Part shown: positions 20,662 through 25,862 of the stretch, one piece after another | Position numbering within the stretch: position 1 is the first letter of the stretch | How the letters are laid out: each line of letters opens with the position of its first letter | Origin: Prasinococcaceae sp. CCMP 1430 | Taxonomy: Eukaryota > Plantae > Prasinodermophyta | Reading direction: 5' to 3' | Length of the DNA stretch: 32,401 nucleotides | Assembly: GCA_013416795.1 (NCBI GenBank) | Contig: RQSC01000028.1 | Coordinates: forward strand, 940,068-972,468 | Notes under the pieces: generated by a model | What the model was told of the DNA's origin: nothing | Databases searched by the model: none | What the model saw: only the letters and a program-made list of their open reading frames with translations | Made by a program: the position numbers and the translations under genes

Positions 20662-22062
20662 CTAGACATTCATGCGCACGATTGAGCTCACCGCGGCTGA
20701 CTTGAGTGTCGAGGACGGCCTGAAAGGCTCCGAGTTGACGAACGCCGGCGTGTACTTGGGGCGCTTCTCCGACCCCTCCGGATCAATCTCAGCCGCGTGC
20801 GCAGGGAACTGGATAGCAAGCGCGCGTGTCCGCGCGCGCGCGGCGCGTCAGTGCGCGAACCACCGTGCGTGGAAGAGCAAGCCGTCGCCAGCCTCGGCAG
20901 GAGCGTCGCGCGCGCCCATGCAGCGCAAAGCGCAACGACGAACGCGCTAACCTTGTTGATGGGTGCGTTGTATCCCTGCTTGGACGGGTTGGTGGGCACG
21001 AAGGGTGTGAGCCCCTTCTCGACAGGCGGGGGCTTGGCATAGTCCGGCGGGATGTACTCATACTCCTTAATCACCCCCTGGGCACCGCCGAGCGTGGTGC
21101 CCGGGACGCCAGGCCCGCCCTTGCGTGTCGGGTTGGCGGGCCTGAAGGGCTTCTCGGTGACGCGAAGCTTGTGCGACTCGGCGCGCTCGCGAATGTCTTT
21201 CTTCCTCTGCAAGTCGTACGGGTCGCTTGAGTAGGTGTACTCGCCGACGCTCCCCTTAGCAGCCTGGCCGATGTTCAGCTTGATCATGCCGTACGTGCCC
21301 CGCTTGCTCGGATTCGTCACGATGTTACGCGGACGCTCGACCACGTCGCCTTTCTTGAGGGGCGTCTCCGCCGCGGAGACGGGCATCGTCTTGAGCTGCG
21401 CGTGCGAATGAAGGCGCGCGTGCGCGTGGCGCGGCCGTGGGCGCGCGGGCGGGCGAGCGGCGCACGTGTGAGTGGCGGCCTTCGCTGTGCCAACTCGAGT
21501 CTTGCGGCCATGCGTGGGGCAAAGCTCCCACGGCGCGCGCGGGCGCATGACACGGGCGGGCGGCTGCGAGCGGCTCGCACTGCACATGCGCGGGCGCGAA
21601 AGAGCACGGAGGCGTGCGGCGGCCGCCGCGGCGCGTCTCGCAGTCCTCGCGTGCCCGCTCGCCCGGGGCCGCGCTGCAGCCCGCCGGCGACCTGAGTGCG
21701 GCGAGCGGCGCCAGCTTGCCTTGCGCCGCGTTGCGCTCGCTCACCTTAGACAGGCACCCATAGTCACCCCCGAGCCCCGAGCTCTCTTTGCCGGGGTTGG
21801 AGGGCCTGAAGGGCGCAGTCTGGACGTATCCCTTCTGGCTCTCCAGGCGCGCGCGCCGCTTCTCCTTGTAGTCCTGCGAGTATTTTTCGCCCGCGTAGAG
21901 GGGCGCGAATTTCCCGAAGGTGGCGTCGTTGCCCTTGCCGGTGCGCCGGCTGCCCGATTTGAAGTTGAGGCCACCGTGCCGGTCGTCGCGCGACTGTTTC
22001 TTCTCGTACGGGTCGCCGATGGAGTTGTAGCCGGGCTCGGAGAAAGTGCCGTACTTGGACAT
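20662..22062 (-). CDS. CFAP96: Cilia- and flagella-associated protein 96 (C4orf47/UPF0602-like), 302 aa; exons 22062-21745, 21395-20952, 20808-20662
   Basis: GTFSEPGYNSIGDPY start, recurring PFRPSNP/PFRPANP/PFVPTNP/PFRPSS motifs, GLGGDYG, and RNIVTNPSKRGTYG. All introns are phase 0. Confidence 0.75.
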
Positions 22063-22438: not shown

Positions 22439-23134
22439 CCGCAGTCCTGCCTGCACATCCACGTCCTAGCCCGCTCCGTCCGCCACCGCCGTCCTCGCCG
22501 GCCGCGGTCCGCGCGCGCGCCCTCCCCCCCCTTTTCCCCTTCCCCTTCACCTCCCGTCCCGCAGCCGGCCGGTGCGTGCTGCGCGCGCGTCCCAAAGCGG
22601 GAGCGTCGCAGCCCGCCGTTGCGTCGAGTGGGAACGGACGGTGCCCGGCCGCATGGCAGGGAGACCGCTCCGGCCGGCCGGCCGGCTGGGCGGCAGCGTG
22701 CCCCCGGGCTGGATGGGTTGGCGGTCCCTCCGTCCGCTGCCGCCTCCTCCGCGCGGCGCGCGGCGCGGCCCAATCAGATTGGGGATGGAACCGCGGAACT
22801 CTGCCTCGCGCGACGACGACGAAGCGGAAGCGGCGCGGGCGTGTGCCCCTCCCCTTGTCTCCTGCTTTTGCCCGTCCGTCTGTTGTTGGGTGGGTGACTT
22901 TGATTGCGTGGGTCATTTGGTTGTTTGGTTGGTTGTTTGGTTGGTTGTTTGGTTGGTGGTCGCCGCGCGCCCTCGCGCGCGCGCGCGCGTTCGCGGGCAT
23001 CCGCTCTGTGCCTGCCTGTCAGTCTTCGGCCGGCTCTGCTCCCGCCGCCTCGCTGCAGCGGCGGCCGGCCGCCTCACTGGCGGCTGCGGCGCAGCGGAGG
23101 GGCGGGGCAGGGCCGAGGGGAGGAAGGGGGGGGG

Positions 23135-23342
23135 NNNNNNNNNNNNNNNNNNNNNNNNNNNNNNNNNNNNNNNNNNNNNNNNNNNNNNNNNNNNNNNNNN
23201 NNNNNNNNNNNNNNNNNNNNNNNNNNNNNNNNNNNNNNNNNNNNNNNNNNNNNNNNNNNNNNNNNNNNNNNNNNNNNNNNNNNNNNNNNNNNNNNNNNNN
23301 NNNNNNNNNNNNNNNNNNNNNNNNNNNNNNNNNNNNNNNNNN
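23135..23342. other. Assembly gap (208 N)
   Basis: Run of N just upstream of the integrase-repeat protein ORF. Confidence 1.
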
Positions 23343-24945
23343 GCAGACGCGGCGCGCGCGCGCCGCCCTGCGCGGGTTCGCGGCGGCGGCGGCGGCGGCG
23401 GAACCTGAGATGGACATGACGGCCGCAAAGGCGCGCGTCGACGCCGACTTGGAGGAAAACTTCGACATCGAGGAACTCTTGGATCTGCTGGACGACGACG
23501 CGGAGCGGCATTCCCCGCCCTACGACTCCCAGCTTGAGTCGCGGCTCGAGACGTGGCGTGACCAGCGCGCTGGCGACCGCATGGAGCTGGGTTTCACCGA
23601 GCATGCCCAGCGGCAGCAGCAGCGGCAGCAGCAGCGGCGGCAGCGGCAACCGCAGTGGGGCGAGGGTGCCCCGGAGGAGCCGCGCGAGGAGGGCGGGGGC
23701 GCGCACGCGGTGGGTGCGGGTCGCGCCGGTGCGGGGGGCGCGTCGGTGACCGGGCGTGACTCTGCGGAGGCGGTGGGATTCCTCCCTTTCGAGGAGGCGC
23801 GCGACAAGGCTCGCCTGCTCGCGTCGGCGGGCGCGAATAGCGAGCTGCTGTATAGGCGCATGGTGTCGGCAGGGGCGGCGGGCACCGAGGGGCTGCCGCT
23901 TCACCCGCACCGAGTCTATCGGCTGGAGGGTTGGCAGTACTGGGAGGACTTTCTGGGCACCCCCGGCGACGTGGGCATATTTCTGCCGTACGAGGAGGCG
24001 CGCGAGAGGGTCCACCAGGCGGGCATCAGAAGCCAGCGCACCTTTCGCGACCTGATCAGGGCGCGCGACCCGCGGCTCGTGGGCGTGCCCATCAACCCGT
24101 CGACGGGCTACGCGAAGTCGGGATGGGTGAGCTGGGCGCAATTCCTCCCCAAAAGCGTCAAGCCCATGTCGCAGGCCGTGACGCTGCTGGCGCCCATGCG
24201 GCTGCGAAGCAAGGCAGACTTCGAGCAGCTGTCGAGGTGGGGCATTCGGCCCGCGGGGGTGCCGTCCAATCCGTCGGCGCACTACATGCCCCACGTCAGG
24301 GAGCACGGCCTGCCCGGCGATAAGCACAACAAGAACCCCACCGAGGAGGAGTTTTGGGACGCGCTGCTCGGCGTGCGCGCGCGCGCGCTCGCAGATGAGG
24401 GCCGGGCGGAGCTCGGCCCTCCGCGCTACCTGACCTACCTCCGCACGCGACGCTTCCTCGATCGCTGGGTGCAGCCGGAGCTCACATGCGAGGAGGACTA
24501 CGAACAGTGGGCGAGTCACGACGAGTCGAGGCGCGGCGCGTGGGCGGGCACATTTCGCCGGCCGGAGAGCATCCCCGAGGACCCGATGTCCGCGTACGCC
24601 AATCGCGGCTGGCGCGGCTGGAGCGACTTTTGCGCGGTCACCGACACGACCAGGTGGTCCGTTCACATCGCACGCCGCCGCCTGCGGCGGCGCACCAAGG
24701 TGGCGGAGCTTCTCAAAGAGGGAGTGCCCATGGACGAGCTGCCGCAGAACTTGGTGACCACCATGGACTTGCCGATGTTCAGGGACGAGCTCGACGAGGC
24801 TTTCTACGAGGCCGAGAGGGCCAGGACTTTCTCCAAAGTGGCCGCCGAGGAGGACGGGGCCGACGACGTCGACGAGACGGACGTCGATGCGGACCTCGAG
24901 GGTGCGGACGACGACGAGCCGGTCATCGCGCAGGCGGGCCTGTGA
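23343..24945 (+). CDS. Protein with four tandem phage-integrase-repeat-like units (Pfam INT_rpt/PF14882-like), a putative mitochondrial presequence and an acidic tail; 5' end in the gap
   Basis: Units at ~23779-23958 (FLPFEEARDKARLL...LPLHPHRVYRLEGWQYWEDFLG), ~23980-24150 (FLPYEEARERV...VPINPSTGYAKSGWVSWAQFL), ~24151-24372 (KPMSQA...LRSKADFEQL...RPAGVPSNPSAHY...FWDALLG) and ~24427-24636 (YLTYLRTRRF...RPESIPEDPMSAYANRGWRGWSDF). Confidence 0.7.
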
Positions 24946-25142
24946 GCGCCCCACGCTCGGCCACACGCGCGCGTGATCGTGCGTGGCCATGCGCGTGCGC
25001 GCACGGCCCGCCGCCCAATTTTTTGGTTTGCTGTATGCTACGGATTTAATAGCGTGTATTGTACCCGCGCGTCCGCTTGCGCCCGGCACGAGCGACTGGG
25101 AGCGAGCGGGGCGTGCGCGGCATGTGTCTGGGTGGCGCTCCA

Positions 25143-25862
25143 TCACGACTCGCAGCCGAAGTTGCTGCTCCGGCGCCTGGCGCCGTACGGCCGCGCCGTG
25201 CACTGCGACGGATTCTCGTCGGGAAATCCCCAGTCCCAGTACCCCGACGGGGTCGACTTCTGAGGAGCGGGCGTCGCCTCGTCCGCCGCGTCTGTGGGCG
25301 CCTCGGCCGTGCGTCCGCGATGGTGCTCCGGGGTCCGCCACCCCGCACCCTCGGGACGCCACCACGGCGCGGGCTGCTGCTGATGTGGCGCCTCGAGGGG
25401 CGACGCGCCGCCCCCGGGCGCGCACGTGCCGGCGCGCGCCGCCTCCCTCGCCGTCTGCAGGAAGTCGGGGGAGTCCGGCTCGACGTCCGTTCGGCGCCAC
25501 TCGCCGAAGGGCACCTTGGCCTGCCTGCCGCCTTTCGCGGCGGCGGATCCTCGCTTGCGCTTCGCGCGCCCGGCGTCGCCGCGCGACTGCCACGCGCCCC
25601 CGCCGGAGTCTTGCGTCGGCACGGCGGGGTCGGTGTCGTCGCCCACGTCCGACCCGGTCCGTGCGTTCGCTGACGGCTTCGCTTCCCCTCCTTCCGAGGC
25701 GGCGGCGGCAGCTGCGGCTGCGAACGCGGGCGCGGCCGGGGGAGCGGCCGGTGGCGCGGGCGGCGGTTTGATGAAAAGGAGGCTCCGCGGGGCAGCGCCG
25801 GGGCACGCGAGGGGGGGGGGGACGCCCCACGTCGCGCGCCGCGCCGGGGCGCACCCCCGCAT
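25143..25862 (-). CDS. Hypothetical low-complexity protein (~239 aa)
   Basis: Open frame with GC-ending codons (…AKRKRGSAAAKGGRQAKVPFGEWRRTDVEPDSPDFLQTAREAAR…GYWDWGFPDENP…). It converges on the previous gene across an AT-richer spacer. The start is uncertain. Confidence 0.45.
   Translation of the reverse strand: MRGCAPARRATWGVPPPLACPGAAPRSLLFIKPPPAPPAAPPAAPAFAAAAAAAASEGGEAKPSANARTGSDVGDDTDPAVPTQDSGGGAWQSRGDAGRAKRKRGSAAAKGGRQAKVPFGEWRRTDVEPDSPDFLQTAREAARAGTCAPGGGASPLEAPHQQQPAPWWRPEGAGWRTPEHHRGRTAEAPTDAADEATPAPQKSTPSGYWDWGFPDENPSQCTARPYGARRRSSNFGCES

Follow-up and report, generated by a model that had tools for sequence, protein, structure and literature searches.

The question raised by this locus is whether a stand-alone array of integrase-type repeats, encoded beside an assembly gap in the alga Prasinococcaceae sp. 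CCMP 1430, represents a new class of organellar nucleic-acid-binding protein, as the original prediction proposed, or a different use of a known prokaryotic module. The window analyzed here is the whole stretch of 32,401 nt (contig RQSC01000028.1, positions 940,068 to 972,468), which has a GC content of approximately 70% and contains several N gaps.

The gene, the upstream gap and RNA-derived contigs

The reading frame opens at 23344 on the + strand, directly after a gap of 208 N (23135-23342), and ends with a TGA stop codon at 24943-24945. Closing of this gap had been proposed, and it has now been bridged by a relative: a member of the same protein cluster, P0160 (610 aa), is encoded on scaffold L004, a gap-free Tara Oceans metagenome scaffold that is 99.1% identical to window positions 23343-25763 and diverges from the window altogether at 25763. 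Positions 1-501 of L004 lie to the left of window position 23343 and match no window DNA before the gap, so the 208-N gap is undersized and its real content is at least about 500 nt; the X13 contig carries 537 nt upstream of 23343. The related sequence L001 breaks at the CAG repeat and does not bridge the gap, and exact pattern and back-translated scans of JGI metagenome contigs aimed at bridging it gave no match. Other assembled contigs skip repeats at this Gln/Arg-encoding CAG tract. The divergent upstream neighbor (21325-22062, - strand) is CFAP96-like (86 bits), which places the gene in eukaryotic surroundings.

The minimal coding sequence (23410-24945, + strand) specifies 511 aa plus the stop codon and shows strong codon-position GC periodicity (.72/.49/.88). 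A contig of 1559 nt (X1), from a run labeled with the same organism, is colinear with 23408-24966 with 0 differences and 0 gaps, and the gene therefore has no intron along this stretch. Marine metatranscriptome contigs X2 and X3 cover 23808-24938 and 24061-24922, respectively, while one metatranscriptome contig covers 23346-23601 and extends about 49 nt into the gap, that is, at least 113 nt upstream of the ATG at 23410, to about L004 position 456. The intergenic bins on both sides of the gene are empty in the RNA-library contigs. Since the RNA evidence consists of assembled contigs and not of reads, it speaks to the presence of transcripts and not to transcript ends or expression levels. The exact 511-aa product and two shorter variants were absent from the protein collection searched, and a word search with the N-terminal 86 aa gave no match. 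We concluded that the repeat-protein gene is real, transcribed, intron-free and nuclear.

Repeat units, family membership and predicted fold

All features of the protein lie on the + strand. The product begins with an acidic N-terminal block (23410-23523, containing DLEENFDIEELLDLLDDD) with a net charge of -10, counted over aa 23-60 of the open frame and without a match in relatives, and continues with a Gln/Arg-rich low-complexity linker encoded by the CAG repeat (23602-23652). Unit 1 (23779-23961, net charge -1) and unit 2 (23980-24153, net charge +5) are canonical. Unit 3 (24169-24378, net charge +1) is degenerate: it misses the FLPxEEAR start and carries an insertion of ~20 aa ahead of the W..LLG end. 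In unit 4 (24427-24636, net charge -2) the first half is degenerate and expanded by insertion, and the second half (RPESIPEDPMSAYANRGWRGWSDF) is canonical. The array is followed by a basic patch, RRRLRRRTK (24673-24699), which by eye only resembles a nuclear localization signal, and by an acidic C-terminal tail (24796-24942, net charge -15 over aa 485-533) for which the sole match outside the window is P0060, a 71-aa piece of this very gene. The whole protein has a net charge of -23. The original prediction had described four tandem units with insertions in units 3 and 4, an acidic block at the N-terminus and an acidic tail, and no integrase, helicase or nuclease attached, and the alignment of the units, the charge counts and the domain scans bear out this description. 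Pfam, NCBIfam and PHROG scans of the ORF gave no meaningful domain match and no enzyme domain, and PADLOC returned nothing for the window protein. It was conceivable that upstream sequence would add an enzyme; no integrase, helicase or nuclease domain was found either in the ORF or in the 570 nt upstream on L004.

The repeat itself was assigned by means of an HMM built only from the repeat units of unrelated proteins (P0002-P0004, obtained by word search). This outside-unit HMM detected four units in the ORF, at aa 146-206, 213-270, 276-314 (partial) and 399-431 (partial), with scores of 27.4, 43.3, 12.5 and 31.0 bits, respectively, and a total of 119.6 bits; the match in unit 3 covers profile positions 5-43 only and that in unit 4 positions 24-56. 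In a six-frame translation of the window the same HMM found nothing beyond the four units and no second copy. The unit motif (an EEAR helix, P-x-x-IP-x-x-P-x-x-x-Y and G-W-x-x-W-x-x-F-L-G, in tandem units of ~55-60 aa) is found in full in units 1 and 2, and units 3 and 4 retain part of it. The repeat had been called PF14882-like, and hmmscan of each unit had been suggested as a check. That check came out negative: the Pfam INT_rpt model gave 0 families with the ORF (E ≤ 1) and with single units (E ≤ 10), and its gathering score of 26.5 bits is not reached by the window protein. This miss can be attributed to the narrowness of the model, which recognizes 18 of 142 units of clear relatives. The Pfam threshold is passed by relatives that match the window protein at E-values of 1e-37 to 1e-72 (phmmer E down to 4e-72), with P0003 at 44.7 bits and P0032 at 216 bits. 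In a comparison of language-model features of the repeat part, INT_rpt was found in 23 of the 30 nearest Atlas clusters. Among predicted structures in the ESM Atlas, INT_rpt arrays are again the closest, at TM-scores of only 0.29-0.43, low values that are due to the flexibility of the arrays. The integrase attachment that gave the family its name is absent in the window protein, and many relatives are stand-alone as well. By transitive profile homology, and below the curated Pfam threshold, the window protein is thus a member of INT_rpt; the PF14882 likeness holds through the profile that links it to Pfam-passing relatives and fails with Pfam's own model. Judged by these profiles, it is a new, eukaryotic member of a known but uncharacterized repeat family.

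Structure prediction had been suggested as well. AlphaFold2 modeled aa 140-440 from an 85-row alignment with a pLDDT of 86.5 (>90 in unit 1) and a pTM of 0.45, and unit 2 alone from 142 rows with a pLDDT of 88.7 and a pTM of 0.72. In the model each unit is formed by a helix of ~11 residues, a second of ~9 and then two single-turn helices, one at P-x-x-x-Y and one at W-x-x-F-L. There is no sign of a rigid solenoid, and the lower pTM of the array suggests that they are loosely coupled. Foldseek against the PDB found no match for the array (best E 0.97, 14-3-3) or for the single unit, VIA-align found no solved structure above noise (best Z 3.8-4.2, RepB oligomerization domain), and no PDB sequence reached an E-value below 0.3 in a profile search. 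The weaker VIA-align matches, namely Myb R2R3 (Z 2.7-2.9 over two units), homeodomains, the RAG1/Transib region and AAV Rep, scored below the noise level of the tool and were rejected.

An analogy to PPR, OPR or mTERF proteins had also been drawn. The likeness ends with the tandem arrangement of helical repeats in the product of a nuclear gene: neither sequence nor fold showed a relation, the window protein has four units without a sign of a rigid superhelix, its near-neutral array and net charge of -23 give no indication of a basic groove, and the targeting peptide is only putative. On these grounds we do not retain the analogy.

Relatives, fusion partners and a possible DNA-associated role

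A full HMMER (phmmer) scan of 1.84 billion representatives (50% clustering) with a cut-off of E ≤ 1e-3 returned 2311 relatives, which makes INT_rpt a very widespread repeat. All of them aligned to the repeat region only; the acidic and Gln-rich parts had no match among the 2311 relatives except for the 71-aa fragment mentioned above. Most relatives carry 5-17 units, and those with a named source come from bacterial MAGs (Lentisphaerae, Planctomycetota), Pseudomonas and tailed phages. Their fusion partners include DEAD/ResIII helicases, Mrr_cat_2+ResIII+Helicase_C, SNF2, ResIII+Methyltransf_8, and Integrase_2+Phage_integrase (tyrosine recombinase; named GmtZ by NCBI), and Atlas clusters combine the repeat with DUF559, GIY-YIG and ExoI_C. 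The identification of the repeat as the bacterial/phage INT_rpt module is supported. A candidate paralog on Logan contig L002 (P0132), supposedly present in the run of X1, was rejected, as the two share only a length.

The INT_rpt arrays (earlier PHINT_rpt) of bacteria and tailed phages resemble the window protein in their tandem units of ~55-60 aa and in the motif F-x-(P/S)-(F/Y)-E-E-A-R ... P-x-x-(I/V)-P-x-x-P-x-x-x-Y ... G-W-x-x-W-x-x-F-L-G, whereas the window protein has a eukaryotic host, four units, no enzyme attached, and a near-neutral array flanked by eukaryote-style acidic low-complexity ends. Two groups of enzymes are instructive. GmtZ/VPA1269-family integrases of Gamma-Mobile-Trio islands (for example P0032 from Pseudomonas) have an N-terminal array of the same repeat; unlike them, the window protein lacks an Integrase_2 or tyrosine-recombinase domain. 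GmtZ is required for site-specific insertion of the Gamma-Mobile-Trio island (bioRxiv 10.1101/2023.03.28.534373), but the same paper is silent on the repeats and assigns them no role, so no function can be transferred from it. Restriction-type helicases of the Mrr_cat_2+ResIII+Helicase_C architecture (for example P0021 and P0218) carry the same repeat as a C-terminal array in the place of the methyltransferase and target-recognition part of Type IIG/I enzymes, and the window protein differs from them in having neither nuclease nor helicase. In P0021, a part that corresponds to the nuclease-helicase head of Type IIG/I restriction enzymes (483 bits) is accompanied by 12 units, which take the place of the other modules of those enzymes. 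A literature search on PF14882/INT_rpt found no function given in the papers that name the repeat. Since the repeat is carried by helicases, restriction-type nucleases and integrases of mobile islands, the nature of its ligand is relevant to phage defense and mobile-element biology, and the short, enzyme-free, expressed eukaryotic version is a handy object for binding and structural studies.

We tentatively favor the window protein as a DNA-associated adaptor of the nucleus or cytosol, at somewhat less than an even chance. Our inferences on DNA binding, on where the protein resides and on what the acidic ends do are as follows. In bacteria and phages the arrays on helicases, restriction-type nucleases and integrases would most plausibly hold the enzyme on DNA. 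In the alga the array has lost its enzyme partner, and the resulting protein (acidic and hydrophobic at the N-terminus, then the Gln/Arg linker, the four INT_rpt units, each small and helical, the Arg-rich patch and the acidic tail) is probably a small DNA- or chromatin-associated adaptor or regulator, in which unit 2 and the Arg-rich patch would form a basic surface and the acidic ends would recruit partners or mask the array. A DNA-targeting role is plausible because the arrays of relatives are fused to helicases, restriction-type nucleases and integrases; judged from these fusion partners and from the units of relatives, which are typically basic (mean net charge +3.2, n=1175), DNA binding is a plausible property of the array. 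If it holds, the protein would be a case in which a prokaryotic targeting module was recruited by a eukaryote.

The charges of the window units themselves point in another direction. At -1, +5, +1 and -2 they are below 91% of relatives, the algal units lack the basic charge typical of relatives, and the array as a whole is near neutral. Other points that weigh against a DNA role are the net charge of the protein, the secreted look of some relatives, the lack of any experiment in the literature showing an INT_rpt ligand, and the lack of any solved structure that resembles the unit. INT_rpt could accordingly be a general protein- or ligand-binding module, in which case the array would have lost nucleic-acid binding or never had it, and the algal protein would serve, with its acidic charge, as a scaffold or chaperone of, for instance, basic proteins. 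Such a role would fit the near-neutral window units, the mostly acidic units of another GC-rich algal member (P0099), the decay of units 3 and 4, and the fact that similarity to known DNA-binding folds did not rise above noise. It would also fit the N-termini of many bacterial relatives, which look like signal peptides (by eye, about 11 of the best 150 of the 2311 relatives) and indicate that the repeat module is not confined to DNA enzymes. On the other hand, the dominant fusion partners of the relatives are DNA enzymes, typical units are basic, and unit 2 (+5) with the adjacent Arg-rich patch retains a basic surface. We regard a scaffold without nucleic-acid binding as rather unlikely.

The supposed mitochondrial leader and the green-algal relatives

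Whether the protein could instead work in an organelle depends on the in-frame stretch between the gap and the first ATG (23344-23409, + strand; QTRRARAALRGFAAAAAAAEPE), which includes a (GCG)7 microsatellite. The original prediction read the sequence after the gap, RRARAALRGFAAAAAAAEP, as a mitochondrial cleavage pattern of the type R-x-F↓A-A. This string does occur, although the first in-frame ATG of the window (23410) comes only after it. L004 has in-frame ATGs at 275, 389 and 572, the last being equivalent to window position 23410; the gene frame is open from the start of the scaffold, and no out-of-frame ATG occurs between the two upstream in-frame ATGs. With a start at L004 position 275 or 389, both of which fall within the gap of the window, the protein would carry an Ala/Arg-rich leader of 61-99 aa cut near RGF↓AA, and the array would have the DNA or RNA of mitochondria or plastids as its target. 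Since both upstream ATGs share the frame of the gene and only 67 nt separate the end of the RNA contig from the nearer one (389), a longer protein with a leader is possible, and 23344-23409 could be the tail of an N-terminal extension. In favor of this, the gene caller gave the 610-aa product P0160, the first 45 residues of P0160 include no acidic residue, RGF↓AA is kept in both strains at a chance rate of only 0.27 per 100 aa for R-x-[FYL]-[AS] (six-frame translation of the window), and a metatranscriptome contig extends upstream of ATG 23410 as described above.

The composition of the upstream DNA argues against a leader. On L004 all three frames are open for about 570 nt, and the length of the ORF is therefore uninformative. 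Codon-position GC is.91/.77/.91 in 23344-23409 and.82/.74/.86 in L004 positions 275-571, which resembles the non-coding DNA further upstream (.70/.81/.81) and not the coding sequence (.72/.49/.88); the switch in composition falls at the ATG at L004 position 572. The 67 nt upstream of ATG 23410 differ from L004 by 3 substitutions and a GCG indel, compared with 4 differences in 1533 nt of coding sequence and 12 in 818 nt of downstream flank. Presequence-like composition is found in 26% of stop-free 22-aa windows in the six frames of the window and by itself says little here. ATG 23410 has G at -3 and G at +4. Moreover, the strong acidity of the mature protein would be out of the ordinary for a nucleoid protein or RNA binder, and the end of the RNA contig before ATG 389 also counts against the longer product. 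Translation most likely starts at ATG 23410 to give the 511-aa protein, and 23344-23409 is most likely 5' UTR. The claim of a mitochondrial presequence is not supported by a stretch that is open in all frames, has non-coding-like codon-position GC and diverges faster than the coding sequence, and we consider an organellar protein unlikely. For a genome of 70% GC the lesson is that leader-like peptides beside assembly gaps do not amount to evidence of organelle targeting.

If the supposed leader is most likely an untranslated leader sequence, the nucleus or cytosol is a likelier compartment than an organelle, in line with the DNA-associated adaptor that we favor. A nuclear leaning, with the localization signals judged by eye, is suggested by the Arg-rich patch and the acidic ends, by a related protein of Pseudoscourfieldia that begins with MPGKRKRS directly before unit 1, and by the array-plus-acidic-tail layout of a protein from Chlorokybus. 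The proposal of a mobile-element repeat domesticated as an organellar binder thus stands in part: a bacterial/phage module does stand alone in a eukaryotic nuclear gene, while the organellar part is unsupported.

Comparable proteins exist in other green algae. A search with P0099 led to annotated nuclear proteins in Pycnococcus provasolii (two; PPROV_000519500, P0181, and P0182), Pseudoscourfieldia marina (RI054_01g06610, P0186) and Chlorokybus atmophyticus (Chlat1/7245, P0236), all annotated as hypothetical. As array proteins of this kind were already public, the claim of a new class does not hold. Like the window gene, these are nuclear genes of early-branching green algae that encode stand-alone arrays, and in the Chlorokybus protein and P0182 the array is likewise joined to long acidic segments. 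The Chlorokybus array is followed by a long acidic and Gln-rich tail, and one of the Pycnococcus proteins is acidic in its N-terminal segment. They differ in having 7-10 nearly canonical units, mostly basic in Pycnococcus, whereas the window protein has four, two of them degenerate. The window units are no closer to these algal units than to bacterial units (ranks 34-203), so common descent within the green algae cannot be claimed.

This last result, together with two degenerate units out of four, the absence of a full-length ortholog beyond close strains in the phmmer scan, and 8 non-synonymous and 4 synonymous differences from L001, would suit the view that a bacterial or viral gene was acquired horizontally and is now decaying, still transcribed but functionless. 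This view is nevertheless very unlikely, because the coding sequence diverges 2.5 to 6 times less than the flank and three strains or populations (window, L001 and L004) share 1.5 kb of uninterrupted frame, and in addition the conserved unit core has 0 non-synonymous changes, the codon-position GC pattern is that of the genes of the host, and the gene is present in several metatranscriptomes.

A broader, doubtful extension of the DNA-associated reading is that early-branching green algae (the source alga, Pycnococcus/Pseudoscourfieldia and Chlorokybus) turned a bacterial/phage INT_rpt array into a eukaryotic DNA-binding domain, which would serve in nuclear regulators whose acidic ends are activation-like or, if an upstream ATG were used, in a protein of an organellar nucleoid. 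If true, a widespread repeat would gain a cellular role and a tractable system for its study, in each case for the first time. The algal member used for the search, P0099, has 8 units; its GC-rich contig also encodes, next to it, a DXP reductoisomerase whose N-terminal extension is of the plant type.

Extent of the INT_rpt family and N-termini of its members

The curated Pfam model of the repeat (PF14882, INT_rpt) recognised 18 out of 142 units taken from clear family members (E<=0.01), and the family is therefore far larger than the Pfam annotation indicates. When the N-termini of the relatives were inspected by eye, we observed signal-peptide-like sequences on the stand-alone arrays P0014, P0018, P0024, P0027, P0056, and P0061, and likewise on P0085, P0091, P0115, P0120, and P0146. 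This suggests that some members of the family may act outside the cytoplasm. The GC-rich bacterial array proteins P0080, P0097, P0132, P0136, and P0142 have in common a helical segment (..LPxxxLxxLAxxYxL..) ahead of the repeats, which lies in their N-terminal 90-130 aa and has no match in Pfam.

A relative with eight units is encoded by a GC-rich (70.8%) alga (P0099, L003:320-2170), and its units are for the most part acidic. The neighbouring genes on this contig (L003:2233-2961 and L003:3043-4386) encode a membrane protein, 63 nt away from the P0099 gene, and a DXP reductoisomerase whose N-terminus carries an extension of the plant type.

Assembly around the array gene

The gap preceding the gene (23135-23342, 208 N) is too short for its true content, since the Tara Oceans scaffold L004 (99% identical) extends 501 nt to the left of window position 23343, with no match to the window sequence preceding the gap, and an X13 contig extends 537 nt to the left of the same position. 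Downstream, the window and L004 are 99.1% identical up to window 25763/L004:2925, where they diverge completely, within a convergent minus-strand gene for an Ala/Pro-rich coiled-coil protein. No splice-site-like boundary is present at this point, and the break thus reflects either structural variation or an assembly error in the window or in L004.

Upstream neighbour and intergenic region

A CFAP96-like gene (cilia- and flagella-associated protein 96; 21325-22062, minus strand; Pfam, 86 bits) lies upstream of the array gene in divergent orientation, which is noteworthy if the alga is truly coccoid and non-flagellate. Between the two genes, a T/G-rich microsatellite with GGTTGTTTGGTT in repeats (22915-22960) is among the few GC-poor spots of the intergenic region.
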